This document shows, piece after piece, positions 24,382 through 46,923 of a stretch of 56,257 bases of DNA. Under the pieces are notes generated by a model. That model ran no database searches and had not been told where the DNA came from. It saw nothing but the letters and a program-made list of their open reading frames with translations. A program made the translations under genes and the position numbers. Positions within the stretch are counted from its first letter, which is position 1. Each line of letters opens with the position of its first letter. The stretch is from Octopus bimaculoides (Eukaryota): assembly GCF_001194135.2 (NCBI RefSeq), contig NC_068988.1, forward strand, positions 92,822,002-92,878,258. Reading direction: 5' to 3'.

Positions 24382-24527
24382 ATGTCAAGTTACCTTCATA
24401 CAAAAGAGAATTCGCAAATTTCGTATGAGACGATCCCTGAAAGATTGCGTAAGAGAGCTGAAGAATATCCAGGCAGAGTGACAATCGTTTGCTACGATGC
24501 AGAATTCCAAAGACACCAAATAACCAT
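24382..24527 (+). CDS. Coding exon 1 of an ANL-family (acyl-CoA synthetase/luciferase-like) gene; 48 codons + 2 nt
   Basis: ATG at 24382 reads MSSYLHTKENSQISYETIPERLRKRAEEYPGRVTIVCYDAEFQRHQIT+AT, then donor GTAAGT at 24528. AT joins the first G of each downstream exon to give in-frame ...QIT-M-KE(V/M)YD, the A1 motif region. The SYxH...TIP..L...AE..P.R pattern is typical of ACSF2-like N-termini. An in-frame TGA lies in the 5' UTR. Confidence 0.9.
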
Positions 24528-24570
24528 GTAAGTATATGCGAAAGTGAATTAAATATTTGAACCCAAAATA

Positions 24571-25453
24571 CAAAGTTTGATCAATAAGTATCCAGACTAT
24601 TGCCATAGTAACAACGGTAAAGCATGCAGAATGAAGCCGCTTGGAAAATTGACCTTGAACTCTGCTGTGCATGCGCACTAAGTTTTAACGTTCTAGTTCA
24701 CCTCCGCTGTTTTCAGCAGTGCTTGGTAGGAAGGTGTGTAGTGTGTAATAGTCGCATTGACCATGACAGAGAAAGCTGCTATGGCGATACCTGCTCAGAG
24801 GTCTACACAAAGTTCCAAAAAGTGTATGGAAAGGAGTGTATGAGCCACACACAAATGTACGAGTGGTTCAGACGTTTCCAAGATGGCCGAAAAATGTCGA
24901 TATTGACGAACGTTCTGGGAAACCAGCAGAACTGAGAAAAATATCGCAAATGTGCGTGAAGCTCTGAGGGGAAATCGTCGAATTACCATTCGTGAGTTAA
25001 CGGAGAATGTATAGATTAGTTACGGTTCAGTTTAGTCCGTTATCACTGAAGATTTGGGTATGAGATGCGTGTCTCCCAAGTTTGTGCCAAGACTGTTTTC
25101 AGCAGACCAAAAAGACAATCGGGTTTCAGTTGCACAAGATCTCTTTGACTGTGTCGAGAACGATGAAAACTTTTTCAAAACTTTGCGTAGGCCTTTGAGC
25201 AGGTTTCACCAAGCTCTTGGCAAAACTTGATGCCGATTCTCTGCTCAACTTTCTCTATCATGGTCAATGCGACGATCACACACTACACCTTCCTTCCAGG
25301 CACTGTTGTAAACAGCAGAACTGAGCTAGAATGTTAAAACTTAGTGTACCTACAGAGCAGAGTCCAAGGTCAATCTGTGCCAAGTAGCTTTACTCTGCGT
25401 TTTTTAGCTTCATTACTATGGCAATGGTTTGGATACTTATTGATCAGACAATG
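24571..25453 (+). mobile_element. Non-autonomous mariner with ~230-250-bp inverted arms, inside intron 1 of the ANL gene
   Basis: TA on both sides (24569-70, 25454-55) and TIR ca..gt.tgatcaataagtatcca. Decayed transposase N-terminus (QMYEWFRRFQDGR..RITIREL..KFVPRLFSADQK), then an inverted copy of the 5' end. Confidence 0.85.
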
Positions 25454-26156
25454 TATGACAGAACAGGTGACGTGCAACGTTCATTGTACCTGTGTTTGTA
25501 TGCCAATATATTTTCTTGTGTGTAGAAGCATAAACATCCATACTCGAGTGACGTATTCTCCTCTGTCACTCATCTTAAATGTTTGGTGTACTTAAGCTAT
25601 GGTCTATCAGAAACTGAAATCGATATACATCGTTTATATAGGAGGCTTACTGGTAGAGTAGTTGAAGCATCGGAAACAATGCCACGTGGTATTTGTTGCT
25701 ACTTTCTGTTTCTGAATTCAAATCCGATTGAGTTGATTGTCATCCTTCCAAGATTAATAAAAAGTTTCAGTCTCTGGTAGAAGACTGGTAGAATTGGGAA
25801 AATGTTGGCTCAGATATCTTGCAAGATTTGTTCTGTAAATATATTTTCGCGTTCCAGATTCGTATCTCGAAACACTCTACTTGGCCGTAGATTTAATCCT
25901 GCAACTGGTGTCACCATCTGGCATCTTAGATGTCTGTAGCAGAGTCCGCTCTTGTGCATACATTGGGGGAAGTCTCCGGATTGAGGATATCTGCATCAAT
26001 TTCTGGGTAGTTTTGCTTGTTAGTTCAGTCAATTATCAACAAAATGCTCTGCGTTCTTTCAAGGGAATATAGAAATATTAAATATATATAATCTACTCTA
26101 TTATGAAACTATGTATTTAGTAGCATATATGTTAAATATGCTGCTTTTCTTTACAG

Positions 26157-27615
26157 GAAAGAGGTGTACGATGGAGCGGTGAAGTTCGCAAAGGCTTTGA
26201 TGAAACTAGGCATTAAAAAAGGAGACACAATTGCATTTTGTGTTCCTAACTGTGTGGAATGGATGAGCTACGATATTGGAATCATGATGACGGGAGCTTA
26301 TTCTATGAGATTAATGTTTGGATTAGCAGATATGAAATCTATTATAAAAGGATGTAGTGCTGTTGTATTTGGATCCAAATCTATTTGGGACAATTTCTTA
26401 ACTATTGCACAAATAAATGATAATGGAAAAGTATCCTGCGAAGCGTGTCTTGATTTGAAGTTTGCCATTGATGTATCCAATACAGATGGACCAGCCAATG
26501 CTTTATCTGCTGCTAAATTGATGGCAGAAATAAGTGAAGATGTCGCAGTTGAATTTCCTTACATTGACCCAGAGGATATTGCATCAATCAATCAGACTTC
26601 CGGAAGCACAGGTGTGCCCAAAAGTATCTGTCACAGCCATTTTGAATACTTGAACTTACCTGATTCAGATCATAATGAGAGTTCTCGCTTTATCATATAT
26701 AATAGTCGTCCAATGGGATATATTGGAGGATATCCGAGGACTGTGCTAACCAGAGGATCATTGCATGTCAGTGGAGACGTAGAAATGCTGAATGATCCGA
26801 AGAATCTCGATTTTGTTATAAACATATTGCAGAGAGAAAAATGCAACATGGTTAGTGTTGCACCACAAGATATGAAGCGACTTAGCAACCGTGATTTCCG
26901 TGTCGATATAATAATATCAGGTGGAGACATGATTACCCGGGATACAATAGAACATGCTTTGAAGATTGCAGATTATTTCTTAGTTGCTTATGGAAGTACT
27001 GAATCTGTCTTCGTATCTTACAAACTTTTTACGAAAGAAAACATTTCGGAACATCGACAAGGAATGTTGGGTCGGCCAGTTGAAGGTACGGAAATCAAAA
27101 TTGTTGACGAGGAGAAGAGGGTTGTAGATATTGGAAAGACAGGCTATTTGTATTTTCGAAGTAAATGGGTAGCAAAAACACATCTGGATGGTACTTCATG
27201 TTTAGAAAATGGTTGGTATCCAACATCAGATATTTGTTACTTAACTGAAGATGGTGATCTCATAATGGTTGGAAGAAGCACAGATTTTATTAAGAAGTGT
27301 ACAGTAAAGTTATCTATTAAACTTATTGAAGATTACGTCGGACGTCATCCGAGTGTAGATGCTGTGGTTGTCGTACCAATCCCAGATCAGGCGGTTGGAG
27401 AACGTGTGTGTGCTTGTGTTACCCTTCGACCAAATCAAGAGTTCAATGAAGAAGAATTGAAAAAGTTTTGTACGGAAACAATGCCGCATCCAGATAACTT
27501 TGATTGTGTATCGATGCATCCTGATTATATTTTATATTTTCCTTCATTTCCACTTTTGGCTAGTGGTAAGTTTGACAAAAAGACTATAACAAGTTTGGCT
27601 CTTAAGAAAATTTAA
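26157..27615 (+). CDS. Terminal exon copy 1 of the ANL/AMP-binding enzyme; 534-aa protein when spliced to exon 1
   Basis: Acceptor cttttctttacAG at 26155-26156. Intact ORF with P-loop NQTSGSTGVPK, YGSTE, YPTSD, GRSTDFIK and C-terminal PLLASGKFDK (catalytic Lys). TAA at 27613-27615. Confidence 0.93.
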
Positions 27616-27706
27616 AAAATGTAATAATTGAATTAAATTATCAAGATGAACAAACGAGCATTTTGGTTTTCGCTGTTTAACATATATGTGTTAAGGTTTC
27701 CTTCTA

Positions 27707-27712
27707 AATAAA
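27707..27712 (+). terminator. Polyadenylation signal of exon copy 1
   Basis: AATAAA ~92 nt after the stop, in a 3' UTR that aligns with that of copy 2. Confidence 0.65.
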
Positions 27713-28787
27713 GGTGACATACTTCGTTAAATATATACATTTATGTGTATATGCTTACATACGTACATACATACATTCATACATGCATATATGCACATAC
27801 AAATATACATACATACATACATACATACATACATACATACATACATACAGGCCAGAAATGTGAAAGACTTTTCCATTTTTTCTAAGCGTTAAACTAATAC
27901 ACCTGCGTGTTGTTCTGTCACCTGTCTTTGTCTTTTGTTTTCTGTACATTTGAACCATGTATTACATAATCTCACGTGCTTACCCCAGTTTGATCCTACC
28001 TGGCTAAACTTCCTCCTCTCATGGGCCCTCATCTCTCCTAACTTATTCTCGAACCTTAGGTATCTCTCCTCATCCACCTAACAATCACCCCACCTGGATT
28101 ATAATTGGGAGTTTGTACATTTTCTAACTCTACCACCATGGATCTTACTATGCACCTTCGATGATGTATATCGCACTAATGATGTATATCGCACTACCAC
28201 GACTTGTCGGACTTTTGGAAAATTTGAACTTCGTACGGTAATAACTCCTTTTTATCTTTATCTCCTATTCCTCATTCCAGTATGCCTAATCACAAATCCA
28301 TTTTCCTCCACCTACGCCACCCTCTCAAACATTATCTCATCTCGCTTACTTTCCGTTGCCTCCAATCTTCTCTCAACGTTTCCCCATTCACTTTCAGAAA
28401 AAACTTGACTCTTCAGTCACTTTCCTTCCTCAGTCGCCGCCTTCATCACAACCTCATCCCCAAACGTTTCCGCCTCCATTTCCACCTTACTCCCCACTCT
28501 TATCCATCCTCTCTCCCACGTCCTGCCCAATCATGCGTGCCACCATCAGTTCTAATCTCTCCAAAATACATACCCTCAACCGCCTCCTCCCCCTTGCTTA
28601 CTCCATCTTTTTCTCCTCTTACACCCCCCTTCGTTGCTCACTCCATCCTACATTTCATGTTCCATTTCAACCGTGTTCTCCACGACTCTCTTGCTCGCAC
28701 TAAACACCATAAACTCCACTCACGCCTTCATCCTGTTCTGCCCGATGCCACTACACCCACTCCTTCCTTCCCACTTCCTAACCCTTT

Positions 28788-28820
28788 CCCTAACCCTAAC
28801 CCTAACCCTAACCCTAACCC
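28788..28820. repeat. (CCCTAA)5 inside the Penelope-like element
   Basis: Directly visible. Confidence 0.9.
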
Positions 28821-29989
28821 ACTCCTTCTTTCGCACTTCCTAACCCTTTCCCCTTCACGCCAACCTCGCTACTGTTCCACCTTCTCACATATCACTTCCT
28901 CCTCTCTTTCTCCTCCCAGCCTTCTACTGTCTCCATCACCCCTATCCCACCTTACTCCCCTTCCTCTACCCAAACCACTCCACTTTACTTTGTTACTAGC
29001 ATTTCTCTAGCTCTCCCCCTCTCCTTAGTAGGGGATCTCCGTTTCATATCTCTCATTCTGTTTAGTTACGAGTTTCGGACCCGTGCTGATGTCTAACAGT
29101 TCGTGCGCCACAATACTCCATCTGCATCTAATGAAGAAGACTGCTTCACTGACCTGGGCTGCCGACCATCTCACTGGACGCCAGCTCCCTCCCATTCGGT
29201 TTCAGGCAGTTGATCAATTTGCTAGTGTCAGTCAACGTGTTGTGGACGGGTTCAACTTTCGCAGGCGTCCCCGATATTTCGACATCTCCCGGACCGAACC
29301 CTCGGCCCTTCAATGTCTCCGACGCCGTCAAGACATCATCATCAAACCGGCCGACAATGTTAGAGCTGTGGCGGTATGACATGCAGAACGCTGTCGGGCT
29401 GATGCGCTTTGCCAACTTCAAGACACCTCCTTCTATCGTCCTAGCTTCACGCCCCAGTTCCATGTCTATTGTCCTTGCTCCACTTCATACTCTCAATGGA
29501 TTGTATCATCCACAGTTCCGGACCTCATTTCCTCCTACTGTATACCTCCCATCGTCCCCAACTTCATTGTCCGTACCCACCCACTATTTACTTCTTTCCA
29601 AAGATCCATACGCCCCATGGTTTTCGCCCGCAGCTGCCTCGCCTCACTCATCTCCAAGTACATCGATCTTGTCCTCGCATCACACCCCTAGCGACTTCCC
29701 TCTCTCCACATATTCAAAATACCAAACATGCTCTCCGTTTATTTAATTCTTTCTCTTCCTCTCCTAGTTCCCCACGACTCCTGTTCACCCTCGATATTAA
29801 ATCATTATATACTGCAGTCCTGTACTTCCACTCAACCGGCCATTTGCTACATCTGTTTGTGTAGATCTGTCTTTGCACAGAGGCCACCTGGACTCCCGCC
29901 TCCGCCGTGAGCACGAAATGATTTTCTCTCTTCATTCCTATGCTCCCTTTGGTTTCAATTCGTTATCTCTCTTTATCTAAAACCAACCC

Positions 29990-30775
29990 TACACACATTC
30001 ACACACATCTCCCACCTTTAATTGCTTTCCTTCTTCCACCCCACACCTCTACACCACCTAACTCAGTATCCTCACCACACACCATTAGGCACACCCTCAC
30101 ACACACATGTACTAACATATACCTCCCCACTCCACACACACTAGTAAGCGATATCTCCCAACCATTAACTCTCACCACCCTTATCCCACATCTCACCTCC
30201 ATGAAAACCTCCACAACACTCAATATTCACTCATGTGAATACACTCAATACACACGCACACAACACGTAGAAACAGACAATATGAACATGCACACAACAT
30301 GCATAAACACACAACTTTTGTGCATAAAAATACACAATACACACGCATGGTTTAGGGTCACGCACACAAACACACACACATACATACACACACACACACA
30401 CACACACTCATAAGGAACAAAAACTTCGTGTACAAACACACACACATGAGTACACACTACACGAGCAAGTACACATTAATTGCAACATATAAGTGATTGT
30501 ACACGCACATACAGACATTTGATATGCTCACACACCTGATAGCCTCACACATGCGTACTATACACAGCTTCACACGCATATACGCACATCCATACATACA
30601 CTGGTACATGAATACACGGAATACACACAACTCCACACAATGCACGCACTGATTTCCTTATGCACACAGACACACATACACACGACCATGCGCATACACA
30701 GATTCACAAAATTTTAAGCTTATCAACACATACATTCATACTCGCTCACCACCATCCACACACACTCTTATACAG
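29990..30775. repeat. Degenerate CA-rich low-complexity tract (another at 22800-23010)
   Basis: Directly visible. Confidence 0.85.
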
Positions 30776-30779
30776 CATT

Positions 30780-31045
30780 TGTTGTATTTCCCTCGGAAGA
30801 CTCGCAGAGATAACACAACGAGTTATACAAATTTAATTATTACATTTATTATTCAATTATATACAAAGAACGCACTCACCCAATGTTCGTTATGAATAAA
30901 CAAAAGTCATGTCCGCCATACATATATCAATGACATTTTACTACGACAGTCACACAAGACAACAACAATGAAACAATGAACTCAGACGAACCACAGTGAC
31001 ACACGGAACGTCAGACGAATTACATATCTAACAGTCCATATAACA
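30780..31045. mobile_element. Solo LTR (266 bp) with 5-bp TSD
   Basis: Termini TGTTG...TAACA; GCATT at 30775-30779 and 31046-31050. Confidence 0.75.
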
Positions 31046-31399
31046 GCATTCTTACATACACACACGTGCTTGTGCATCCCAGTTCAGCCGAGTCACCCTT
31101 ATCATCTCCTCTCTACTCAGCCTCTTTCTAAGGGTCACTTCATTATGTTAAACCATCAATCCCAACAAGCTTTTTTTCCTCTCTCCGTCTTTTTTTGTCT
31201 CTCCACTTTTTTAACTCTCATCCCTTTCTGTCGAAAAGTGTAAGCTCGAAACGTCAAAGACTTTTCCATGCTTCCCGGGTGGCTTGTTCTCTCGCCTGTC
31301 TTTGTCCTTTGCTTTCTGTAGATCCCGCTAGTGATGAATATTTCTCATCCTATTGGTCAAAGAATTCCTCAACAGCAGGTGCTTCTAGATGTCTCACCA

Positions 31400-31640
31400 T
31401 TGTATAAGGTGCACAGAGTGTGCTTGTAAAGACAAGAACATGACATACATTGATGAGATTTTTAGAAGCATTACGGAGAGATTAAATGAACATTTGAGAC
31501 AACATGACAGCAAAAATGGTCCCCCATACTCTACCAACATTCCAGAAACCATATTGGGCTGACTTACATCCGCATTTTATCGAAGAACCCGAAGGACACA
31601 TTCACTCAGACACATACAGGAGTACGTCCTCATAAATGAA
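31400..31640 (+). mobile_element. Penelope-type GIY-YIG endonuclease fragment
   Basis: CIRCTEC...TYIDEIFRSITERLNEHLR resembles the YIGET.R....R..EH motif. Confidence 0.55.
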
Positions 31641-32510
31641 ACGTCTCCCCGTACGAAGTAGGAAATACACGTAGAAGGTAGTGGTACCCCAATACCCACA
31701 GTATATACATACACAGGCAGATTTGTTAGTAGGCTGTTATGTAGGCGAATATATATATACATATATATAATCTCTGAACGAGGTATAAACAGCAGCAGCA
31801 CGGCGACGTGAAGTATATTTGCCACTTAAATGCGGCTAAACCCTAAGGGTGAATGCTACTGTAGCTTTTAGCCCCAGGAGAACATCTCCTCCACCTGGAT
31901 ATTGATACATAGGCAGGTAGACAAATGGATATGTAGATAAACAGATAGGTAAATAGTAGATAGGTACATAGGTAATATGGACAGACAAGTACACACACAA
32001 ACACAAACACATGAATATGCAGAATACATACATACATACAAACGTATACACATGCATACATACACATACATACATACATACATATGTGTATACACATGCA
32101 CGCTGATGCACACACATTCGCACAACCAAACAAAAAGAACGCAGTTCCGATTACAGGCAAAGTCAACAACTATTGAAGAGGTTGTAAGAAGCTATGAAAA
32201 TTTTCGAAAAAAAGAATAAGTAAATGAGTAGAAATCGAACAGGTGATTGTGTTAATTAATTAGACATTAAGACAGGATTATTCTCCCCAGACACAACAAA
32301 ATATGCTTCAACACACGAATTCACTTAAGGAATCTTGCAAACAAAGCACAAAAAAGAAATATATATATATATATATATATACACCAGTTGTTGAGTGTCC
32401 CACCTATAGGGGATCCATGGTAGATGTGTCGAAACAATTGTCGTGATTAACAATAAATTCTCGTATATTCCATCTCCCGTCATTCATTTGCCATATATAT
32501 ATATATATAT

Positions 32511-32558
<48 letters not shown>

Positions 32559-32588
32559 AATATGTGACAATTATTCGGTAGCCATAAT

Positions 32589-32649
32589 GATAAAACTCCG
32601 AGTTTCGGATGTCTGGGCGGAAACCCACGTCGCCATCTCTTCAGTTATC
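32589..32649 (-). ncRNA. Candidate type I hammerhead ribozyme
   Basis: Minus strand: GATAA-CTGAAGA-GATG...CATCC-GAAA-CTCGGAG-TT-TTATC. Helix I GATAA/TTATC, palindromic helix III ACTC(G)GAGT, GUU cleavage triplet, one bulged C in helix II. Confidence 0.6.
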
Positions 32650-32669
32650 TGGCCATCGATATACATACA

Positions 32670-32709
<40 letters not shown>

Positions 32710-32956
32710 ATAAGTGTGTATAGGGATAAAATTATCCAGGCGTCTACCGTGGTAGCTCTCAGGTATATTCCAGGTTACGGCTAACCGCTTCAACTAGTAT
32801 CAAGCGACAAAAATTGCTAAGTATTAGCAACCTCGCTGAAATTCTTCCGATGGGTAACTCCGGTTTCACTTCCCTGGATTATATATATTATCAAGACTGT
32901 AGATTTCTAACAGTTATAAGCAATTATAAATGTTAGTGGCTATGTTCTAAAGACAG

Positions 32957-33290
32957 ACGCAGGCGTGGCTACGTGGTAAGAAGGTTGCTTCACAACCCCA
33001 TGGATTCGAGTTCAGTTCTATTACGTTGCACCTTGGCCAGTATCTTCTGCTTTTCCTCGGGCCGACCAAAGCTTTGTGAGTGGATTATATATTTCACTTG
33101 TGTGCCTTCGTATCTGTCTTTGTCCCCCACCTCACCGCTTGACAACCGGTGCTGGTGTGTTTACGTCCCCATAACGTAGCGGTTCGACAAAAGAGACCAA
33201 TAGAATAAATACCAGGCTTTAAAAAATATAATCTCCAAGGTGATGCCCCAGCATGGCCGCAGTCTAATGACTGAAACAAATAAAAGATAA
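32957..33290 (+). mobile_element. tRNA-derived SINE with internal microsatellite
   Basis: Head ggcgtggctacgtggtaag...ttcgagttcag, body cgcttgacaaccggtgctggtgtgtttacgtcccc, tail gcatggccgcagtc.aatgactgaaacaa. Copies at 40075-40460(-), 23655-23780(-), 36780-36970(+), and 44790-45345(+, split by microsatellites). Confidence 0.8.
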
Positions 33291-33321
<31 letters not shown>

Positions 33322-33364
33322 GATATGTAAATATTTGCGTGTGTGTTTCTTCAACAAGAATAGT

Positions 33365-34022
33365 AGCTGTTAGATCATGTGAACTCAATAAAGCCATCCA
33401 TACAGTTCACAATGGAAAAAGAAAAAGACAATCAGCTGGCATTCCTGGACGTATTAATAACACGCACCAAGAATGGATTCAGGACATCCGTACACCGCAA
33501 GCTGACCTTCACTGGACGATATCTCAACTTCAATTCCCACCATCCATACAGTGTAAAGAGAGGGATTGCTCAGTGCCTAAAACATCGAGCAATGAATATA
33601 AGTAGCGATCGTGATACCCACCACGAAGAAATGATGAAGCTCAGTAACAATCTGTTAAGCAACAACTACCCCAAAAGCATACTCTCCACTCCAATTATGA
33701 AGAAAAGAGAGGATGAAACCAATAAACTGTCTACAGTCTGTCTACCCTATGTGAAAGGCCTCTCCGAAAAGATACAAAAGATATGCAACCCATATGACAT
33801 CAGGACAGTATTCAAAAGTAATACAACACTTCGCAAATATCTCCTTCAGATAAAGCCACCAATAGAAGAGAATATGACCAAAAAACTGCGTGTACTCCAT
33901 CCCATGCAGCTGTGGTAGGTTATACAAAGGCGAAACATGTCGCCCCCTCAAAATAAGGGTAGAGGAACATCGCAAAGCTGTGACACGGTGAGATATTGAT
34001 AAATCGGGTATAGCTGATCATG
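33365..34022 (+). mobile_element. Young 5'-truncated Penelope-like element (RT thumb + GIY-YIG)
   Basis: IQFTMEKEKDNQLAFLDVLI..TGRYLNFNSHHP..LPYVKGLSEKI, one frameshift near 33885, then CVYSIPCSCGRLYKGETCRPLKIRVEEHRK. Confidence 0.9.
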
Positions 34023-34759
34023 ACGGCTGCAAACTCGTGTTCGAGTATTGCCAACGCCTGATCGAAAGATCCATACATGCGAATGCTACGACCAGCCACT
34101 TTTTGATAAGTCTTACCTCTTTTCAAGCGATGCCTGTGCATTTTTTTTTATAATGGGGGAATGATTTGCACAAATCCTGTCCCAGGTTCTGAACGTGAGC
34201 AACATAAACTCGAAAAGAAGAACTAGTCTACATCATCGAATATTGACAGTGTCACAGGTTTTCTCTCAGTGTTTCCCTCTCCTAGAGAGATGTTGTAACA
34301 GCAACACAGGGTCCTCTCACTCGCAGTGGGGCACCGCGCGCCTGGACACTAACCCAGGTATTTCCACGTCTCCGAGCATACAAACATGCATACATACAAA
34401 TGTACACATATTGTCAGTTGGCTGTTGACTGCTCATGAGCTTTTCTGCTCTTTGACAGGTTTAATTTTTCGTCCTGAAGGGTGTCGAACAATTATCCTTC
34501 TCACCAAACAAGTTTGATGGGGGTTGCCAGTTTAGGCACCGATTATACAACCATGCAACTGGTTGTATTGGGTTAAATGTTAGTAGCGCCCAAGAGCTCA
34601 CCTGGCATACACACATATATGTGCATATACATACATACACACATACACATACATATATACATACATACATACATACACATAAATACATACATACATGCAT
34701 ACATACATACATGCATACATACATACATACATATATACATACATACATACATACACAAC

Positions 34760-35510
34760 ACATCGTGGACAAAAGTTTGTCAGGAATTCAGCCTAACTAT
34801 CAGTCTGAAGAAGACCAAAGTACTGGGCCAAGGTGCCAAGCACCCCTCTCCACCATCGCTATCACCATCACCATCAACAGCTACAAGCTGGAAGTAGTCC
34901 ATGAATTCACCCACCTCGACTCTACCATCACTGATGACCTCTCTATGGACCCTGAGATCAATGGGAGAATTGGATGAGCGTCCTCCACATTTGCCAGGCT
35001 CACAAAGAGAGTCTGGGAAAATAGAAAACTGGCTGCAAACACCAAGATTGCTGTCTATACGGCGTGCGTCCTTAGTACGCTACTTTACGGTAGTGAGACA
35101 TGGAGTCTCTATTCCAGATAGGAGCGGCGTCTCAACGGCTTCCACCTTCGTAATTTGAGACGCATCTTGGATAACAAGTGGACCAACCACATTACCAACA
35201 CCGAAGTCCTCAACCGCACCAAGATACTCAGCATTCTCGGCCTGCTTCAGCCGCGTCGTCTGCGTTGGCTCGGTCATATACATCGCGTGCCAAATGGGAG
35301 GATCCCAAAAGACCTCCTGCATAGGAAATTGGCCACCGGCACACGAGCACGAGAACGATCTCATCTTTGTTTCAATGACGTTTGTAGGAGGGATATGTCA
35401 CTCGATCAAGACGTCCTGAGATGGGAGGAGGTCCCAAATGATCGCCGATATTGCAGACAAATACTGCGGAGAGGATGAAGCGAGCAGAAGACAAACAGGA
35501 ACTCGTCACT
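34760..35510 (+). mobile_element. RTE-clade LINE 3' fragment
   Basis: LTISLKKTKV, F.RLTKRVW, VLSTLLYGSETW, RRLRWLGHIHRVPNGRIPKDLL. Confidence 0.9.
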
Positions 35511-35521
35511 AAAAAAAAACG

Positions 35522-35563
<42 letters not shown>

Positions 35564-35852
35564 CACTACTACAGCCAACGATTCAAGTCAACGTACAAGA
35601 CAGCCATTATGTCCCCACACATAAAATGCTTCCACGTGAACTCTGTTGACACCAGTAAGAAACAATTATGAAATTTTCTTTGAATTACACTTTTTTAAAA
35701 AATATGTATTTTTGATAAGGTTAGTTTTTTCAGGAACCGAAACATGTAAAATATCTCTGAGAAAATTAAAATTTATCGTGTATAGTGGTGCTTTTAAACT
35801 TTTTTTTATAAATATATACCCACTCGTATGTCACCTACACTTTTTATCCATA

Positions 35853-35926
<74 letters not shown>

Positions 35927-37260
35927 GTCATATTTTGACATTTATAGGCATTTTTATGAACTACGTCCAATATTCGCGGTTTTTCATTATTCGTGTGTGG
36001 TCTAGGAACGTAACTCCTGCAAATACCAGGGGACTACTGTAATGATAAGTTGAACCTTGTATATAAGTAGTAGTTTGTATAAATGTAGTTTGATTGTCGG
36101 TATATATATATGGTTATGCATGAACTACTGAATAGAAAATGCTCGAGAAATAAAATGCACTTACCTATTTAAAACCTGAAACGCTGGGGAATCAAATCAA
36201 CGAATTGAAATAAGTTTTAGCAAATGCAAACAATTCGTATTGAAATGCAGAATTAGCAAATGCTAATGAGATTACCGTTATTAAGATGTCTGTTTGTACC
36301 CATGAAACAGTTATCGTCGAACTTCGGCATTTTTCGTCAAATTGTAATCTTTATTAATGGGTAAAACCAATTTGGCGAAAAAATGACCAGAGTCTGATAG
36401 AGAACCCGTGTCGTCATCATTTTTGTGTATGTGCGTAAAACAAGTTTTTGGTCTCAACTCATCCTTAGCGCATATTCCATCGGTGTATAAAATTTCAAGA
36501 AAATCGGCTGAAAACTTTAAAAGTCATGGCAGAAAATAACATTCATATGAGAATTTGCATTGAAATGTCCTATCGATTTTACCCTCTCAGATTCACACAC
36601 TTTTTGCAGCTGACCTTCAGTTTTTTAAGCCTTGTAACTGAACTCGGGAGGCCGGGCCTCCAGTATTGCCTCTCCCGATACACTTAAAGCCAAGAACTTT
36701 TTAGGCTGGCTCGAGTAAAATAACATATATGTGTATGTCTCAGTGTGTGTGCGCGCGCACGTGTGTGTGTGTATGTGAGTGTATTTTCATTTGTGTTTGT
36801 TTCTTCCACTGCTTGACAACTGGTGTTGAATTATTTACGTCCTCGTAAGCTAGCGGGTCGGCAAAGAGACGGATTGAATATAAACAGTACTGTTGCTGAT
36901 TTTATCGACTTCAAGGTAATTCCTCAGTATGGTTGCATTCCAATGACTGAAACAACTAAAAGATAAAAGCTACAGAAATCCATACATACAAACACACACA
37001 TGTGTGTATGTTCAGTTGATTGGAGCGCGGGCGGGGTGGAGTCAAAGAGTACAGAGGTGGAAGTTTACTGTGGTGTTTGTGAATTCAGAATTTACTATCT
37101 TGGCCATAGATATCACTGAGATTTCTGTTGGTAGATTAAACTATTACCATCGAAGTTATCTGCGCTTTCTTAATATAATATAGAAATGTAAATAACTTAC
37201 TATATCACGAAATTATGTGATTAGCGGCATACATGTTAAATATGTTACTTTTCTTTGCAG

Positions 37261-38725
37261 GAAAGAGATGTACGATGGAGCGGTGAAGTTCGCAAAGGCT
37301 TTGATGAAACTAGGCGTTGAAAAAGGAGACACAATTGCATTTTGTGTTCCTAACTGTGTGGAATGGATGAGCTACGATATTGGAATCATGATGACGGGAG
37401 CATATTCTATGAGATTGATATTTGGATTAGCAGATATTAAATCTATTATAAAGGGATGCAGTGCTGTTGTATTTGGATCCAAATCTATTTGGGACAGTTT
37501 CTTATCCATTGCACAAATAAATGATGATGGAAAAGTATCTAGCGAAGCGTGTCCTGATTTGAGGTTTGCCATTAATGTGTCCAATACACACGGACCAGCC
37601 AATGCTTTATCTGCTGCTAAATTGATAGCAGAAATAAGTGACGATGACGCAGTTGAGTTTCCTTACATTGACTCAGAGGATATTGCATCAATCAATCAGA
37701 CTTCCGGAAGCACAGGTGTGCCTAAACGTATCTGTCACAGCCATTTTGATTGCTTAAACAACAAGGATTCAGATTTTAAGGACACTTCTCTTATCATATT
37801 TAGCAGTAGGCCAATGGGATATAGTGGAGGATATCCGATGACTGTGCTAACCAGAAGATCATTGCATGTCAGTGGAGACGTAGAAATGTTGAATGATCCG
37901 AAGAATCTGAATTTTGTCATAGACATATGGCAGAGAGAAAAATGCAACATGGTTGGTGTTGCACCACAAGATTTGAAGCGACTTAGCGACTGTGATTTCC
38001 GTGTCAATATGATAATGTCAGGTGGAGACATGATTACCCGAGATACAATAGAAGATGCTTTAAAGGTTGCAGATTGCTTCTTAATTTGTTATGGAAGTAC
38101 TGAATGTTTCTTCATGACTAACAGAATTTTTACACTAAAAAACATTTCGGAACATCGACAAGGAATGTTGGGTCGACCAGTTGAAGGTACTGAAATCAAA
38201 ATTGTTGACGAGGAGAAGAGGGTTGTAGATATTGGAAAGACAGGCTATTTGTATTTTCGAAGTAAATGGGTAACAAAAACACATCTGGATGGTACTTCAT
38301 GTTTAGAAAATGGTTGGTATCCAACATCAGATATTTGTTACTTAACTGAAGATGGTGATCTCATAATGGTTGGAAGAAGCACAGATTTTATTAAGAAGTC
38401 TACAGTAAAGTTATCTATTAAACTTATTGAAGAATACGTTGGACGCCATCCGAGTGTAGATGCTGTGGTTGTCGTACCAATTCCTGACGAGGCAGTTGGA
38501 GAACGTGTGTGCGTATGCGTAACCCTTCGACTAAATCACAAGTTCAATGAAGAAGAATTGAAGAAGTTTTGTACAGAAACAATGCCGCATCCAGATAACT
38601 TTGGTTGTGTATCGATGCATCCTGATTATATTTTATGTTTTCCTTCATTTCCACATTTGGCTAGTGGCAAGCTTGACAAAAAGACTATAACAAGTTTAGC
38701 CATGAAGAAAATAACAAAAATGTAG
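37261..38725 (+). CDS. Terminal exon copy 2 of the ANL enzyme; 536 aa if spliced to exon 1
   Basis: Acceptor cttttctttgcAG at 37259-37260, same phase as copy 1. Intact ORF, ~85% aa identical to copy 1 by manual count, with one in-frame 3-nt deletion. Ends ...KKITKM-TAG. The ORF-track N-terminal extension from 37217 is intronic. Confidence 0.9.
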
Positions 38726-38812
38726 TAATAATTAAATTAAATTACCAAGATTAAGAAACGTGTATTTTAGTTTTCCCTGTTTAACATGTTAACGTGTTAA
38801 GGTTTCCTTCTC

Positions 38813-38818
38813 AATAAA
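38813..38818 (+). terminator. Polyadenylation signal of exon copy 2
   Basis: AATAAA ~88 nt after the stop, at the homologous position (ggtttccttct..aataaa..gg.gacat). Confidence 0.65.
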
Positions 38819-39724
38819 GGCGACATGCTTCATTAAATATATACATGTATATATGTATATGCTTACATACATGCATACATAAATACATACATACGTACAT
38901 TCACTCTTATTATCTCCCCTTCACTCAACCCTTTTCATAATGTTGAACAATTAATCTCAACAAACACTTTTTTCTGTTTCCGTTTTTTAACTATCTTTCC
39001 ATCCCCCCTCTTATCCCTTTCTGTCAAAGACCTCTCTACTGTTCTCGGAGTGCTTGTTGTTCTCTCACCTGTCTTTGTGTTTTGTTTTCTGTACATTTGA
39101 ACAATATATATATATATATATATATATANNNNNNNNNNNNNNNNNNNNNNNNNNNNNNNNNNNNNNNNNNNNNNNNNNNNNNNNNNNNNNNNNNNNNNNN
39201 NNNNNNNATAAAGGTAAGCAGACTTAGCGGTTATAGTAACCGACTAAGGCATAAAATACCCGTATTTACTATCGGTGTCAGTTAACCGTGTTAATTCTGG
39301 CCATGGGTATGCAGGTACAGTATGCTCGTCGAGTACAGGTAACAAGAGAAACAAATTTAGATAATTAGAAAATGGAGAAAACCCCAGTAGATTACCCGTG
39401 ACTCGTTGGGGCACCTGAAAAGTCTGAGTTTCCTAGAAACTGAGTTTTGTTTCGTACTTTTTTTTTCTCTTCCATTTTATTTCGCATGCTTTCAACGAAT
39501 GTGACATCGAAATCACGAGTAAACAGGTATTTTCCTCAGAAAAGTAAAGATTTGCCTACTATTTCTTGCATGCCCTGCTACCACGTAACACCTATTTCGG
39601 GTCCTTTATTGCAAATAGCTGTCACGTGGTGGCAGGGTGTGCTACAAATAACAGTAAAATCATTGGAGATGAGATACGTTGAATGCACTCGAAAGAAACT
39701 TATTGAAAAAAAAACTATTTCGCA

Positions 39725-40064
39725 CTGATGTTACGAACGGGTCTTTTACGAAATATTTATCTTACTTATAAAGTCATTTTCACTTAAAAATATTTTGCCT
39801 ATCATAATGTGTTAGAGTTTCTTCCCTTTCAGGGTGAAGTTATTTTCGGAGTATTTTCCCATTATGCACCGTTTTGGGTATTTGCACCCCAAACCCCCGA
39901 ATATCTCAATAACTAGTGGTCCGATTTACGCGGAACTTGTTTTATTCCGTTCGTATTCACATTTCAGGGACACTTTACTTTCAAATTATTTTCCCATTAT
40001 GCGCTATTTTGGCTGTGTAGCATTGCAAGCAAGCAAGATTGAACTTCACTTTTAATAGTATACA
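39725..40064 (-). mobile_element. Possible non-autonomous Helitron-like element
   Basis: Minus strand starts atgtatactattaaaagtgaag followed by (CTTG)n, the same architecture as the element at 56029. Confidence 0.4.
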
Positions 40065-40526
40065 TTTATATATTCTTTTATTCATATACTCGTTTCAGAC
40101 ATTTGACTGCGGCCATGCTGGAGAGCTGCCTTTAGTCGAACAAATCAACTCCAGGGCTAATTCTTCGGAAGCCTAGTATTTATCCTATCAGGCACTTTTG
40201 CCGAACGACTAAGTTACGGACGTAAACACACCAACATCTGTTGTCAAGCGATGGTGGGGGAACAAACACAGACACATAAACACATACACACGCACACACA
40301 CATATATATATATATACGATGGGGTTCTTTCAATTTCCATCTACCAAATCCATTCACAAGGCTTTGGTCGACCCGAGCTATAGTAGAAGACATTTGCCCA
40401 AGGTGCCACGCAGTGGGGCTGAACCCGGAACCATGTAGTTGGTAAGCAAGCTACTTACGATATATATATATACACACATACATCTATACATACATGCATG
40501 CATGCATGCATACATACATACATACA

Positions 40527-40557
<31 letters not shown>

Positions 40558-40762
40558 GTATGCATGTAGGTGTATAGGTATTATATGACTACCGATATGC
40601 AAATGAATACATACGAGGATCGGCCGAAAAGTTCACAGGCTCACCAACATGCTCCTATCGAATGCGACTGAATCCCACTACATACACACACACACACGCG
40701 CGCACATGTATGTATGTATGTATGTATGTATGTATGTATGTATGTATGTATGTATCAGCTTC

Positions 40763-40813
<51 letters not shown>

Positions 40814-42040
40814 GAGAAGAAAATTGAGAGTTAATGGTTAATAATCATTTATCAATAAATGGATAAACATTCATTCCTACAATTGTTTCAATTTGTACTC
40901 ATTCTATAAATCACAAATTTATGCAATAAATCAGCATTTATAAGTTATGGGCAAAATATCATCAGGGAAATATAAGACATTAAGAAATTACATGTTAACG
41001 AATCCGTTCTTTCAGCAAAGTAAAATATGGAATTGTTTCTATTTCTATTTTNNNNNNNNNNNNNNNNNNNNNNNNNNNNNNNNNNNNNNNNNNNNNNNNN
41101 NNNNNNNNNNNNNNNNNNNNNNNNNNNNNNNNNNNNNNNNNNNNNNNNNNNNNNNNNNNNNNNNNNNNNNNNNNNNNNNNNNNNNNNNNNNNNNNNNNNN
41201 NNNNNNNNNNNNNNNNNNNNNNNNNNNNNNNNNNNNNNNNNNNNNNNNNNNNNNNNNNNNNNNNNNNNNNNNNNNNNNNNNNNNNNNNNNNNNNNNNNNN
41301 NNNNNNNNNNNNNNNNNNNNNNNNNNNNNNNNNNNNNNNNNNNNNNNNNNNNNNNNNNNNNNNNNNNNNNNNNNNNNNNNNNNNNNNNNNNNNNNNNNNN
41401 NNNNNNNNNNNNNNNNNNNNNNNNNNNNNNNNNNNNNNNNNNNNNNNNNNNNNNNNNNNNNNNNNNNNNNNNNNNNNNNNNNNNNNNNNNNNNNNNNNNN
41501 NNNNNNNNNNNNNNNNNNNNNNNNNNNNNNNNNNNNNNNNNGTGATTAAACTATTTCTTCCTTTCTATGATGTTCTACCCTACTGATCATTTTCTGTATA
41601 TTTGTAATGGTTTTTATGTAAGTCTCCTAATTATATAGCCCCTAGAAACTATAAAATCATATATGTAATAGTACCTGTAACATTGCAACTTATAAAATCT
41701 CTTCGGAATACCGCCAACTGTCCTCACCACTCCCATACCTACGACCTCCCCTTTTAGGGCTACCTTTATCTCTTCCCTACCTCAAATTTTAATACACTGT
41801 CTCGTCTCTTTAAATGTAAGTTTTATATATTTCTTATCACTTTCTATAAATTCTTATTATTTTGTTTTCTTACTTTGTTATCCTCACCATTTAACCTCTT
41901 ATCCCTTAAAGTTCTTGAAAGTGGTGTATATTCTTAGCTACAATAGCAACAACATGGATTTCTTCCATCTTCTTGCTATGTTAAAGTATTTGAGTAAAAT
42001 TATATTAATGTGTCCGACTGATTAAAATCCTGTTTATTTG

Positions 42041-42126
42041 TGCAGCTGATGACAGCCCTGCATTTAAATTGATGTAATGATTGCATTGTTCAATTAAATG
42101 GAGCCGCTTGAAACGATCGTACTGCA
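42041..42126 (+). ncRNA. Candidate type I hammerhead ribozyme in a Penelope-like 3' remnant (~41545-42180)
   Basis: TGCAG-CTGATGA-[long helix II, catttaaattga/tcaattaaatg]-GAAA-CGATCG-TA-CTGCA. Helix I 5 bp, palindromic helix III ACGATCGT, GUA site; the first helix II pair is a C.T mismatch. Confidence 0.6.
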
Positions 42127-42322
42127 TCACTTCTTGATATCCTGTTGCTTATTTTGATTTTATTCACCTTACTTTCGAGCTGTGCGGATAATACCGAACT
42201 GACTTGGTGCTTCAGCTTAAGAACCTAATTTAACTGAATCTCAATTATTTCTCTACAGATACATATGTACATACAGACAGATATGTAAAAGCATATACAT
42301 GAGCGGACACACACACACACAT

Positions 42323-42369
<47 letters not shown>

Positions 42370-42864
42370 CACGTAAAAAAATCGTATATGAACGCTATTG
42401 ATATTTATGCCCATTGGTTAAAGTAATCTGAATATTTGTACATGTGCTTAAGCGTTTGAGAAAAATATCAAATCATAATGGTTTGTCACTTTATGCGTGT
42501 TTACGTAATCATATGACAATAAAAGGTTTACTGTTACTATTCTATATACATACGTACACACATACATACATATATACATATATATGTGTGTGTGTCTGTG
42601 CGCGCGCGCATGTGATCATTACGACGTTCAACTCTATAGTATTTGGTTTTAATTATCGTATAATTAAATTAATGTTGTGATTTAATTTATTTACGTAAAA
42701 CGATTTGTGTATGTACATGTTTGTTTATTCTCGTTAATATTTATAAGATTGACAGTGAGGTTACAATTAAAAGTATCCTGTTATTTATTAATCTGTTTAT
42801 GAAATTAAATTATAACTAGTATTAATATAATCTATAATCTATATTTGATTTACATTATTAGCTA

Positions 42865-43640: not shown

Positions 43641-43960
43641 ATAGTACGTTAAGTTCTTTCAGTGCTATTCAGAGAGGAAAAAGTTTACCTCACAGGGACT
43701 ATGTGAGATGGTTAAATAGAGGAAAACATTAGAGTTCAATATGAGGAATTATTTTGGAAAAGGAAGCAAATAAGGAGTATATAGTGAAATAGGAGAATGA
43801 ATGTAGAAATAAGAATAAAAATGTATAAAGATGTTATAGTTGCAGTTCGATTATCCAAAAAAAGTGGTGTGTAGAAGTGGTATAAGTAAGCATGTAATTT
43901 TCATGATTTGAGGATTTGACATCTCCTTTCAACATGTAAGTAGACTACTTAGTGGTTTTC

Positions 43961-44571
43961 CTTACATGCTGAAAGGAGATGTCAAATTCTCAAACCACGA
44001 AAATTACATTCTTATTTATAACACGTTGAATGTAAGTGGGCAAGAAAATTTGAAAAATAAAAAAAAACCCAGTTATTTCTATACCAGTTATTCCACCATT
44101 AATAATCAAATAATCTGTGGATCTTCAGTAGAAACTGCTGGAGGTGTATAATTATAAAACTCAAATACGTACCATATCCCAAAGGACACACGTGCATATC
44201 GATTGTTATCTTTATACATCGTGAATTTAATTCACGTCTTCAACCAACGCACCAAGCCAGAATAAAGCAGCAGTGAATAAAAGTTCAGCAGTGAATTATT
44301 TGACTCAAGAATTGAAATAGTTAAATAAAAATATACCATGTATGCTCGATATGGACGTGTGTCCTTTGGAATATGGTATGTATCTGAGTTTTATAATTAT
44401 ACATCGCCCGCAGTCTCTACTGAAGATCCACAGATAATTTATTTAATTATTGATGGTATAGAAATAACTGGTCTTTTTTCAATTTTTTCAAATTGTCTTG
44501 CCCGTCTACGTTCAACGTGCTATAAATAAGAATGTAGTTTGGGGATTTAACATCTCCTATCAACATGTAAG
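43961..44571. mobile_element. Foldback element with ~250-bp inverted arms
   Basis: 43961-~44212 is the reverse complement of ~44345-44571 (e.g. gtggatcttcagtaga/tctactgaagatccac; ccaaaggacacacgt/acgtgtgtcctttgg). Confidence 0.85.
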
Positions 44572-44714
44572 GAGACTTCTTAGTGGTTTTCCTCTTAGTG
44601 TGTAATTTATACACACGTATACATATATGTATATAAATAATGTATGGTCTACAGACAACTTTTTTACGCATGCTGGCCACTGGTATAAATTATTATTTTT
44701 AATGATTTTTACCC

Positions 44715-44765
<51 letters not shown>

Positions 44766-44914
44766 ATATATATACGTATGTATATAATCACAAGTAGGTC
44801 TCTGTGATTAAGAAGCCGGTTTAGTCTTGATCAAGTGTCTTCTAATGTAGCCCTGAACCTTCCAGTGCCTTGTAAGTGAACTGAGTAGACGGAAACTGTG
44901 CGGAAGACCTTCAG

Positions 44915-44970
<56 letters not shown>

Positions 44971-45092
44971 GCTCACTATCAACTGACTGAAAAAAGAGCA
45001 CTCAGTAGCATTTCTGAGGCTCACTCGGCAAAAGAACATATATGTGTATGTGTGTCAATGTGNNNNNNNNNNNNNNNNNNNNNNNNNNNNNN

Positions 45093-45158
<66 letters not shown>

Positions 45159-45632
45159 ATGTATGCGTGTGTACGTGTGTGTATGTGTATTTTCGTCTTT
45201 GTTTGTTTCTTCCACTGCTTGACAACCGGTATTGATTTATTTACGTCCTAGTATGCTAGCGGATCGGCAAAGTGCCGGATTGAATAAAAAAATTACTGTT
45301 CCGATTTGATCAACTTCAGTAACTGAAACAAGCATGAGATAAGAGCTACAGACAGACATATATACAGACACACACATCACATATGTGTATATTCAGTTGA
45401 TTGCAAGGAGGGTCGAAGTGCACTGTGGTGGTGGTGAATTCAGAATTTACTATCTTGGCCATATATTTTAAACAGGGCTAATTATACGATAACAATCGCT
45501 GAGATTTCTCTTGGTAGATTAGACTATTATTTGCACTTTCTTAATATAATATAGAAATGTAAAAAAAACTACTATATCATGAAACTACTTGTTTAGCAGC
45601 ATACATGTTTAATATGTTACTTTTCTTTGCAG

Positions 45633-46923
45633 GAAAGAGATGTACGATGGAGCTGTGAAGTTCGCAAAGGCTTTGATGAAACTAGGCATTAAAAAAGGAG
45701 ACAAGGTTGCAGTTTGTGTTCCTAACTGTGTAGAATGGATGAACTACGATATTGGAATCATGATGACGGGAGCTTATTCTATGAGATTAATGTTTGGATT
45801 AGCAGATATGAAATCTATTATAAAAGGATGTAGTGCTGTTGTATTTGGATCCAAATCTATTTGGGACAATTTCTTAACTATTGCACAAATAAATGACAAT
45901 GGAAAAGTATCTAGCGAAGTGTGTCCCGATTTGAGATTTGCCATTGATGTATCCAATACAGATGGACCAGCCAATGCTTTATCTGCTGCTAAATTGATGG
46001 CAGAAATAAGTGAAGATGTCGCAGTTGAATTTCCTTACATTGACCCAGAAGATATTGCGTCAATCAATCAGACTTCCGGAAGCACAGGTGTGCCTAAATG
46101 TATCTGTCACAGCCATTTTGAATATTTAAGCATGCCCGATTCAGATTTTAAGGAGACTTCTTATTTTACTACATTCAATAGTCGTCCAATGGGATATATT
46201 GGAGGATATCCGTTGACTGTGCTAACCAGAGGATCATTGCATGTCAGTGGAGACGTAGAAATGCTGAATGATCCGAAGAATCTCGATTTTGTCATAAACA
46301 TATGGCAGAGTGAAGAATGCAACATAGTTGGTATTTCACCACAAGATTTGAAACGAGTTAGCGATCGCGGATTCCGAGTTAATATGGTAGCATCAGGTGG
46401 AGACATAATTACCCGGGATGAAATAGAACATGCTTTGAAGATTGCAGATAGTTTCATGGTTGCTTATGGAAGTACTGAAGCTTTCATCATATCTCATCGA
46501 ATTTTTACCCCAGAAAATATTTCAGAACATCGACAAGGAATGCTGGGGCGACCAGTTGAAGGAACGGAAATCAAAATTGTTGACGAAGAGAAGAGGGTTG
46601 TAGATATTGGAAAGACAGGCTATTTGTATTTTCGAAGTAAATGGGTAACAAAAACACATCTGGATGGTACTTCATGTTTAGAAAATGGTTGGTATCCAAC
46701 ATCAGATATTTGTTACTTAACTGAAGATGGTGATCTCATAATGGTTGGAAGAAGCACAGATTTTATTAAGAAGTCTACAGTAAAGTTATCTATTAAACTT
46801 ATTGAAGATTACGTCGGACGCCATCCGAGTGTAGATGCTGTGGTTGTCGTACCAATTCCTGACGAGGCAGTTGGAGAACGTGTGTGCGCATGCGTAACCC
46901 TTCGACTAAATCACAAGTTCAAT
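45633..46923 (+). CDS. Terminal exon copy 3 of the ANL enzyme; 3' end lost in an N gap
   Basis: Acceptor cttttctttgcAG at 45631-45632. Open frame with the same motifs up to LNHKFN, then N-run 46924-47001; about 58 codons are missing. Confidence 0.85.

Follow-up and report, generated by a model that had tools for sequence, protein, structure and literature searches.

Can a single short first exon serve several catalytic bodies that lie one after the other downstream of it? This question is raised by a locus of Octopus bimaculoides, which was analyzed within a stretch of 56,257 nucleotides (nt) of chromosome CM046608.1 (∼92.82-92.88 Mb; hereafter the window, the first letter of which is position 1), and in which one 146-nt coding exon is followed by three long paralogous exons. 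The locus is read here, at a probability of roughly 0.7, as one transcription unit for adenylate-forming enzymes of the ANL superfamily ("ACSF2-like" in RefSeq), the alternative last exons of which arose from tandem duplication. The features on which this reading relies are the following (a slash marks an exon-intron boundary; CDS, coding sequence; UTR, untranslated region).

24382..24527, plus strand: shared first coding exon (exon 1), 146 nt, 48 codons plus 2 nt, phase 2.
24528-24533, plus strand: exon-1 donor GTAAGT, in the context AT/GTAAGT.
24528..26156, plus strand: intron 1 up to copy 1, with mariner-like remnants and an inverted repeat; orthologous to the Octopus sinensis intron preceding body A.
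26066..27796, plus strand: duplicated unit around copy 1, made up of ∼77-90 nt of intron, the exon, and ∼180 nt of 3′ UTR.
26157..27615, plus strand: copy 1 terminal exon CDS (body type 1), acceptor ttttctttacag/G; orthologue of O. sinensis A-D.
27707..27712, plus strand: copy 1 AATAAA poly(A) signal, ∼92 nt past the stop.
36730..38904, plus strand: duplicated unit around copy 2, with ∼500-530 nt upstream common to copies 2 and 3.
37261..38725, plus strand: copy 2 terminal exon CDS (body type 2), acceptor ttttctttgcag/G; orthologue of O. sinensis E.
38813..38818, plus strand: copy 2 AATAAA poly(A) signal, after the copy 2 stop.
45633..46923, plus strand: copy 3 terminal exon CDS (body type 3), acceptor ttttctttgcag/G; orthologue of O. 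sinensis F.
46924..47001, no strand: assembly gap, which hides the last ∼56 codons of copy 3, its stop, and its 3′ UTR.

Exon 1 translates into MSSYLHTKENSQISYETIPERLRKRAEEYPGRVTIVCYDAEFQRHQIT, followed by two nucleotides (AT), and constitutes the N-terminus of the RefSeq proteins XP_014777838.1 and XP_014777836.1. Downstream of it, three long open reading frames lie on the same strand (26164-27615, 37217-38725, and 45640-46923, the last one running on into the gap), and they are 85-91% identical to each other at the DNA level. All three acceptors consist of a pyrimidine tract and CAG/G in phase 2, so that joining to exon 1 (AT/G) restores a methionine, which is then followed by K-E-(V/M)-Y-D-G. 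Copies 1 and 2 each have their own stop (27613-27615 and 38723-38725, respectively) and poly(A) signal; copy 3 reads open for 430 codons up to the assembly gap in which its end lies, and its orthologue F has a stop. Compared with copy 1, copy 2 shows one in-frame codon deletion and a shifted stop, and both copies 2 and 3 contain an in-frame ATG seven bases into the exon. The pyrimidine tract with CAG/G was kept in every intact body of both O. bimaculoides and O. sinensis; in the frameshifted body D of O. sinensis, the corresponding triplet is CAA.

A second homologue of exon 1 was not detected across the window by tblastn, even with a word size of 2 and an E-value of up to 100, the sole match being exon 1 itself. 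Hidden copies of exon 1 could also be dismissed when the window was considered together with the O. sinensis loci L001, L005, L006, and L009, all of which returned only the real exon. The region between copies 1 and 2 (27616-37260) is without N and belongs to a longer N-free stretch between 22514 and 39128. What is expected of the donor side of an alternative-last-exon gene is, thus, what was observed: one upstream exon with a GTAAGT donor and no private homologue before the downstream copies, both in the window and in 54 kb of gap-free O. sinensis sequence. On the acceptor side, the sequence that copy 1 has in common with the other copies beyond the exon is limited to the ∼77-90 nt of upstream intron and the ∼180 nt of 3′ UTR listed above. 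A preliminary description of this DNA, made from its letters, had anticipated most of this anatomy, and its account holds: the single 146-nt exon ending in AT/GTAAGT, the absence of an exon-1 homologue between copies 1 and 2 in DNA free of N, the three phase-compatible polypyrimidine acceptors at 26157, 37261, and 45633 that restore M-KE-x-YD, and the private stops and AATAAA signals of copies 1 and 2 (27613-27615/27707 and 38723-38725/38813) were all recovered. Copy 2 is indeed fully open with an in-frame event as its only indel (besides the shifted stop), and the boundaries of the duplicated units agree with a duplication that took only the 3′ end of the intron, the last exon, and the 3′ UTR.

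The spliced product matches the Pfam domains AMP-binding (PF00501, E = 4e-43, residues 23-390) and AMP-binding_C (PF13193, E = 2.5e-9), and the anatomy described above is not due to chance. The ANL core motifs, that is, the P-loop TSGSTGVPK, YGSTE, and the C-terminal catalytic lysine (SGK), are present in copies 1 and 2; copy 3 contains the P-loop and YGSTE, its C-terminal lysine region falling into the gap. Of the earlier designation "acyl-CoA synthetase/luciferase-like", membership in the ANL superfamily was confirmed by Pfam, the luciferase part denoting the superfamily and nothing narrower. The best solved relative of XP_014777836.1 is DhbE (1MD9, E = 1.6e-28), and the nearest solved relatives in general belong to the bacterial enzymes that adenylate aryl acids (DhbE, salicylate-AMP ligase, EntE/BasE-type) and not to the fatty-acyl-CoA synthetases. 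The name ACSF2 was assigned automatically by RefSeq, which calls copy 3 a naphthoate-CoA ligase; what the enzyme acts on may, therefore, hardly be reflected by the label "ACSF2". In the alignment with DhbE, residues 11-48 of exon 1 correspond to residues 20-57, and the Pfam AMP-binding match begins within exon 1, at residue 23. As these DhbE residues are structured, a body alone would lack part of the fold, and exon 1, which encodes a structural part of the ANL N-domain, is required to complete it.

The same layout is found in O. sinensis, for which two overlapping loci cover 54 kb without N. There, one exon 1 is followed by bodies A, B, and C, a fragment, D (frameshifted), and E, and then, 13 kb further on, by F; five of the bodies (A, B, C, E, and F) are intact, and a second exon-1 homologue was not found by tblastn in these 54 kb of gap-free sequence. 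The comparison with another octopus that had been proposed at the outset, thus, yielded the same single-exon-1 arrangement. The copies of the window can be paired with the bodies of O. sinensis through their flanks.

Copy 1 with O. sinensis A-D: flank synteny; the B unit copies the equivalent of window 24732-27976 (exon 1 excluded, most of intron 1 included).
Copy 2 with O. sinensis E: flank synteny, ∼4 kb upstream.
Copy 3 with O. sinensis F: flank synteny, both flanks conserved.

Since flank synteny pairs the copies with O. sinensis bodies in this way, the three body types and the single exon 1 predate the split of the two species. O. sinensis RefSeq products starting from exon 1 terminate with body A (540 aa), B (534 aa), C (537 aa), or E, and isoform X4 corresponds exactly to exon 1 plus E across a 17.9-kb intron that skips A-D. 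Body D (L009 19335-20797) is frameshifted near 19931-19949, and its acceptor AG is changed to AA. The RefSeq isoforms X3 and X6 (XP_036361265.1 / XP_029639698.2) are chimeric, combining the front half of one body with the back half of E, X6 starting at the MYDG of D; these chimeras reflect either real splicing within bodies or a workaround of the gene predictor Gnomon for the frameshift.

Further relatives bear on how the array came about. The two closest paralogues in Argonauta hians, 70% identical to the window product at the protein level, are complete two-exon genes with private first exons, located ∼60 kb apart and with no extra bodies nearby. In O. bimaculoides itself, 55 Mb away on the same chromosome (CM046608.1, 37.60-37.63 Mb; locus L003), a private exon 1 with three amino acid differences precedes a copy-3-type body (XP_014790470.1, 540 aa), and the ends of the intron between them are homologous to window positions 24528-24830 and 43970-45632. 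This suggests an ancestral gene of exon 1 and a body of the copy-3 type, within whose intron copies 1 and 2 originated. This reading of the ancestry is not firm, as the L003 intron is interrupted by a gap of ∼1 kb, which could hide further bodies; the L003 region as a whole is very gap-rich. That L003 is an allelic haplotig of the window was dismissed, its non-coding identity to the window being merely 87-93%. A fourth, more divergent paralogue (XP_052825845.1; L004) lies ∼40 kb from L003.

Constraint on the bodies was assessed from the ratio of non-synonymous to synonymous changes, corrected (dN/dS) or uncorrected (pN/pS).

Copy 1 vs copy 2: dN/dS 0.49, p = 5e-4 (test on uncorrected pN/pS, 0.51).
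Copy 1 vs copy 3: dN/dS 0.38, p = 5e-6 (test on uncorrected pN/pS, 0.40).
Copy 2 vs copy 3: dN/dS 0.40, p = 1e-5 (test on uncorrected pN/pS, 0.43).
Copy 1 vs A (orthologues): dN/dS 0.27, p = 5e-12.
Copy 2 vs E (orthologues): dN/dS 0.34, p = 1.4e-8.
Copy 3 vs F (orthologues): dN/dS 0.23, p = 2.7e-11.

The bodies are, thus, under purifying selection. A dN/dS near 1 for copies 2 and 3, which the preliminary description had regarded, in combination with a lack of transcription, as speaking against its proposal, was not obtained, the orthologue comparisons yielding 0.34 and 0.23, respectively. Identity along the exons is mosaic: over codons 321-400, all three copies share 97-99% identity, and over codons 41-80, copies 1 and 3 do not differ at all (100%), whereas codons 161-200 and 241-320 reach only 78-88%. 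When codons 161-200 and 221-300 were taken as variable blocks and compared at the amino acid level, orthologues were closer to each other (copy 2 vs E, 89%; copy 3 vs F, 91%) than paralogues (80-85%). Outside of these blocks the order was reversed, with within-species paralogues (94-96%) closer than orthologues (92-93%). Because of this reversal, the pattern indicates that gene conversion homogenizes the scaffold while the type-specific blocks are retained across both species. Within the blocks, the comparison of copy 3 with F gave a pN/pS of 0.43 (p = 0.02) and that of copy 2 with E one of 0.71, the copy-1 type yielding 0.53-0.86. Positive selection in the blocks was considered from pN/pS values of 0.4-1.3 and is not claimed, the blocks having been picked post hoc for their variability and the counts being small.

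The variable blocks extend from the P-loop to just past YGSTE, and their most variable positions align to DhbE residues 238-240, V329, and V337; the equivalent residues of EntE form the substrate pocket. Because the positions that vary most align to positions of the pocket, it is a reasonable inference from the alignment that the bodies differ in substrate preference.

Which junctions are actually used is indicated by public gene models. XP_014777838.1 (ACSF2 isoform X2, 534 aa) is 100% identical to exon 1 plus copy 1, and XP_014777836.1 / XP_052826227.1 (isoform X1, 536 aa) are identical to exon 1 plus copy 2; X1 and X2 belong to one RefSeq gene with a common CDS start on the chromosome, and both isoforms have been present in RefSeq since the first O. 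bimaculoides annotation. From these models we infer the junctions of exon 1 with copy 1 and copy 2, and the latter is probably a real mRNA junction. No public model in either species joins exon 1 to copy 3 or F, and a junction-centered query (exon 1 plus copy 3) for transcript-derived protein fragments returned two irrelevant matches only; likewise, the sequence clusters of the isoforms contained no Logan or RNA-derived members. That copy 3 is spliced to an upstream coding exon is favored by the ancestry seen at L003, the conserved acceptor, and the constraint of 0.23, and even odds are given to a real mRNA junction between exon 1 and copy 3. The original proposal that one exon 1 is spliced to any of the three bodies can, thus, be upheld for copies 1 and 2 through the RefSeq isoforms, and is unproven for copy 3, for which RefSeq has a separate model (XP_014777840.1, 435 aa) with a first exon of 38 nt.

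44338..44375, plus strand: 38-nt mini first exon (MYARYGRVSFGIW) of XP_014777840.1, at the center of the palindromic repeat 43877-44737; doubtful.

This mini exon was rejected as a conserved private exon of copy 3, as it is missing in O. sinensis and its donor is changed from GT to AT in the L003 paralogue. The palindromic (inverted-duplicate) repeat around it, upstream of copy 3, also occurs in the L003 intron. For O. sinensis F, three of four RefSeq transcripts encode 486 aa from MYDG and the remaining one encodes 526 aa with a non-homologous first exon; the latter was not accepted as conserved either, being absent from the window and sitting in a locally duplicated element.

As had been predicted, separate, N-truncated genes were called elsewhere for such a locus: the O. 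vulgaris annotation comprises one full protein and then six entries beginning at or after MYDG. The 2015 O. bimaculoides models deviate in another manner, with a transposon-derived exon placed before copy 1, and copy 2 fused to the retroelement open reading frame 33379-33918. The former, an extra exon of 51 codons between exon 1 and copy 1 (A0A0L8GUY2), is part of the region of the intron-1 inverted repeat (24568-24778 / 25246-25456, 81% identity), which brackets mariner-like coding remnants. The retroelement of the latter (A0A0L8GUI4) is syntenic upstream of O. sinensis E (L006 21211-21926, 91%). Another retroelement open reading frame of the window, at 16501-18080, resembles a LINE reverse transcriptase by eye, with a RefSeq call carrying an RVT_1 domain at 16510-16956.

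The following mechanism would account for these data. The ancestral gene would have had two exons, a 146-nt first and a ∼1.46-kb last one, and the latter would have been duplicated in tandem together with a bit of the upstream intron, the 3′ UTR, and the poly(A) signal, leaving extra copies behind a single first exon. Transcription would start upstream of exon 1, and the strong GTAAGT donor would pair with the acceptor of copy 1, the RNA being cleaved at the copy 1 AATAAA; alternatively, upon read-through, the donor would pair with copy 2 and the RNA end at the copy 2 AATAAA. Copy 3 may be used likewise. Every product would then carry the same first 48 residues, forming the N-terminal helix and strand of the fold, and the catalytic bodies attached to them (∼90% of the enzyme) would differ mainly in the two blocks that align to the acyl/aryl substrate pocket. 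Enzymes of different substrate preference would, in this manner, probably be produced from one promoter; the choice among the copies may be regulated. A more far-reaching version, an Octopus-specific enzyme cassette in which one promoter and N-terminal exon are combined, by regulated choice of splicing and polyadenylation, with one of three bodies in O. bimaculoides or five to six in O. sinensis and O. vulgaris, and in which conversion keeps the scaffold uniform while selection preserves and diversifies the pocket blocks, is tentative and put at somewhat less than even odds.

Several observations weigh against a single transcription unit. RefSeq models copy 3 and O. sinensis F as separate genes, which hints at independent 5′ ends, and gives them other, non-conserved 5′ exons in both species. 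The Gnomon isoforms may rest in part on protein alignments, which makes the evidence for the exon 1-to-copy 2 junction indirect. The private branch of O. bimaculoides copy 2 has an omega of ∼0.67 (11 synonymous and 28 non-synonymous changes), not significantly below 1, and the open frame of a silent copy could be maintained by conversion from one that is expressed. The C-terminus of copy 3, including the catalytic lysine, is unassembled. Furthermore, no docking/selector RNA pairing was found when the beginning of intron 1 was compared with the sequence that precedes each of the bodies: duplex energies were in the range of shuffled controls, and reverse-complement words of at least 9 nt common to these regions were absent.

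Alternatively, copies 2 and/or 3 could be independent units, transcribed from their own lineage-specific, possibly transposable-element-derived promoters, and exon 1 would serve copy 1 exclusively or for the most part. The 5′ exons joined to the same acceptor would then be short and either non-homologous or non-coding, and the proteins would start at the methionine of KE-M-YDG or with an unrelated N-terminus. The separate RefSeq gene for copy 3, with its first exon at 44338-44375, the separate gene with four transcripts for O. sinensis F, the start of O. sinensis isoform X6 at MYDG, and the in-frame ATG of copies 2 and 3, seven bases inside the exon, are all in line with this. However, the MYDG methionine is ancestral and is shared by P0109 and the two Argonauta genes, all of which have first exons of their own, neither of the proposed 5′ exons is conserved (that of O. 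bimaculoides is missing in O. sinensis, and its donor was lost in L003, while that of O. sinensis does not occur in the window), the products would miss residues that align to a structured part of DhbE, and copy 2 and E use exon 1 in the RefSeq models of both species. Independent units are, thus, considered unlikely. Even less probable is that copies 2 and 3 are non-functional duplicates, dead on arrival, which stayed open through recent origin and conversion from copy 1 and whose isoform models are artefacts of protein alignment. The mosaic identity (97-99% over codons 321-400 in all copies, 100% over codons 41-80 in copies 1 and 3) and the non-significant omega of ∼0.67 on the private branch of copy 2 would fit, and O. 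sinensis D demonstrates that bodies of the array can decay. Yet, the three types are older than the split of O. bimaculoides and O. sinensis (dS ∼0.2) and are open in both species; the type-specific blocks, not homogenized between types within a species and 89-91% identical between orthologues, are open as well; pN/pS in the blocks of copies 2 and 3 (0.71 and 0.43) is similar to that of the copy-1 type; and every open copy has an intact acceptor and poly(A) signal, whereas the acceptor was lost in the one decayed copy.

An assembly artefact, with private first exons of copies 2 and 3 hidden in runs of N, or with collapsed or misjoined scaffolds, could also mimic the layout. The window contains 14 gaps in all (e.g., 4026-4318, 8831-9627, and 50759-51543), and a second exon-1 homologue does exist in the genome, 55 Mb away in the gap-rich region of L003. 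Nonetheless, 27616-37260 is free of N, and the layout with a single exon 1 recurs over 54 kb of O. sinensis sequence without gaps. Three gaps fall within the array upstream of the end of copy 3 (39129-39207, 41052-41541, and 45063-45092), and because all of them are located between copies 2 and 3, in DNA that is non-coding, no reading frame is interrupted. Gap 45063-45092 is bridged by a colinear alignment to gap-free O. sinensis (2168 vs 2196 nt), and since the lengths are nearly equal, it cannot hide a 146-nt exon. The other two are contained in 39129-42585, which has no counterpart at the orthologous position in O. sinensis, the two flanks being directly adjacent there; the suggestion that a first exon of copy 3 may reside in gap 41052-41541 is, thus, not supported. 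Taken together, an artefact of this kind is very improbable.

The remaining gap of the array, 46924-47001, accounts for the missing end of copy 3. Its 78 N correspond to 431 nt in O. sinensis (L005 13762-14192) between flanks matching 46923 and 47002, and as these 431 nt include the last 177 nt of coding sequence, the end of copy 3 was most likely lost in assembly and not truncated in the genome. Gap lengths in the window are, accordingly, unreliable (78 N standing for ∼431 nt), and di- or tetranucleotide microsatellites (TA/CA/TACA) border many of the gaps that were checked, suggesting that the assembly breaks at simple repeats. Directly after the copy-3 gap, on the minus strand, 47002-47589 is a remnant of a mariner-type transposase (HPPYSPDLAPSDYHLF). 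The same remnant is found downstream of O. sinensis F (L005 14193-14718, 89% identity), and, therefore, the insertion predates the species split and leaves copy 3 undisrupted.

The architecture of alternative last exons is itself known (GSTD1, lola), and the octopus locus is partly present in public annotation already; a paper describing it was not found in the literature, nor is it mentioned in the SPLASH octopus analysis. Provided that the junctions hold up, the locus is a clean and evolutionarily young case of terminal-exon duplication turning a two-exon gene into a multi-product locus. It forms part of a series, with separate complete genes in Argonauta, three bodies in O. bimaculoides, and more in O. 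sinensis and O. vulgaris, and in its array, concerted evolution and retention of type-specific blocks act together. The bodies represent natural chimeras for studying ANL substrate specificity. The locus also flags systematic misannotation, as in the N-truncated O. vulgaris "genes" and the transposon-fused O. bimaculoides models of 2015, and counts of ANL gene families in cephalopods should allow for this.

Among known systems, the closest in layout is GSTD1 (aggst1-alpha) of Anopheles gambiae, in which a shared 5′ coding exon is reportedly followed by four alternative 3′ exons. As in the octopus locus, a small shared exon encodes the N-terminus, tandem alternative 3′ exons encode the rest, and several enzymes are derived from one promoter. 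GSTD1-6 is one of four alternatively spliced GSTD1 variants (PMC2588609). The two loci differ in enzyme family (ANL instead of glutathione S-transferase) and phylum, and whereas the Anopheles isoforms were demonstrated by cDNA, those of octopus are known from gene models; furthermore, the octopus bodies are larger (∼487 codons, ∼90% of the protein) and subject to gene conversion. In Drosophila, lola, mod(mdg4), and PGRP-LC combine a constant 5′ part with one out of a set of duplicated 3′ modules that have separate ends. They are a looser match, encoding transcription factors or a receptor and consisting of many exons. Transcripts of mod(mdg4) and lola are partly trans-spliced, and for PGRP-LC, competing RNA pairings have been reported; such pairings were not found at the octopus locus.

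Within the ANL superfamily, human ACSL6 and ACSL1 make alternative use of duplicated exons for the fatty-acid gate domain, which changes a motif related to the substrate (PMC1543647). The statement in the preliminary description that no precedent is known for an ANL enzyme has to be narrowed in this respect: alternative duplicated exons do occur in ACSL6, but these gate-domain exons are short, internal, and mutually exclusive, whereas those of octopus are terminal, comprise the whole body, and have their own poly(A) sites. The crystal proteins wsluc1-4 of the squid Watasenia scintillans have O. bimaculoides proteins as their closest database relatives (up to 40% identity) and share 24-26% identity with human ACSF2 (PMC4899746). 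They are likewise cephalopod ANL enzymes, which implies neither luciferase activity nor a light organ for Octopus. We know of no ANL case with whole-body alternative terminal exons, and none was found. UGT1A and the clustered protocadherins combine tandem variable first exons, each with its own promoter, with constant 3′ exons. The octopus locus is their mirror image, with the constant exon at the 5′ end and the choice coupled to polyadenylation, the likeness residing in an array that diversifies the domain conferring specificity. Should the cassette reading be true, the locus would represent a 3′-end counterpart of UGT1A in a family related to the squid crystal luciferases, providing tissue-specific substrate specificities.

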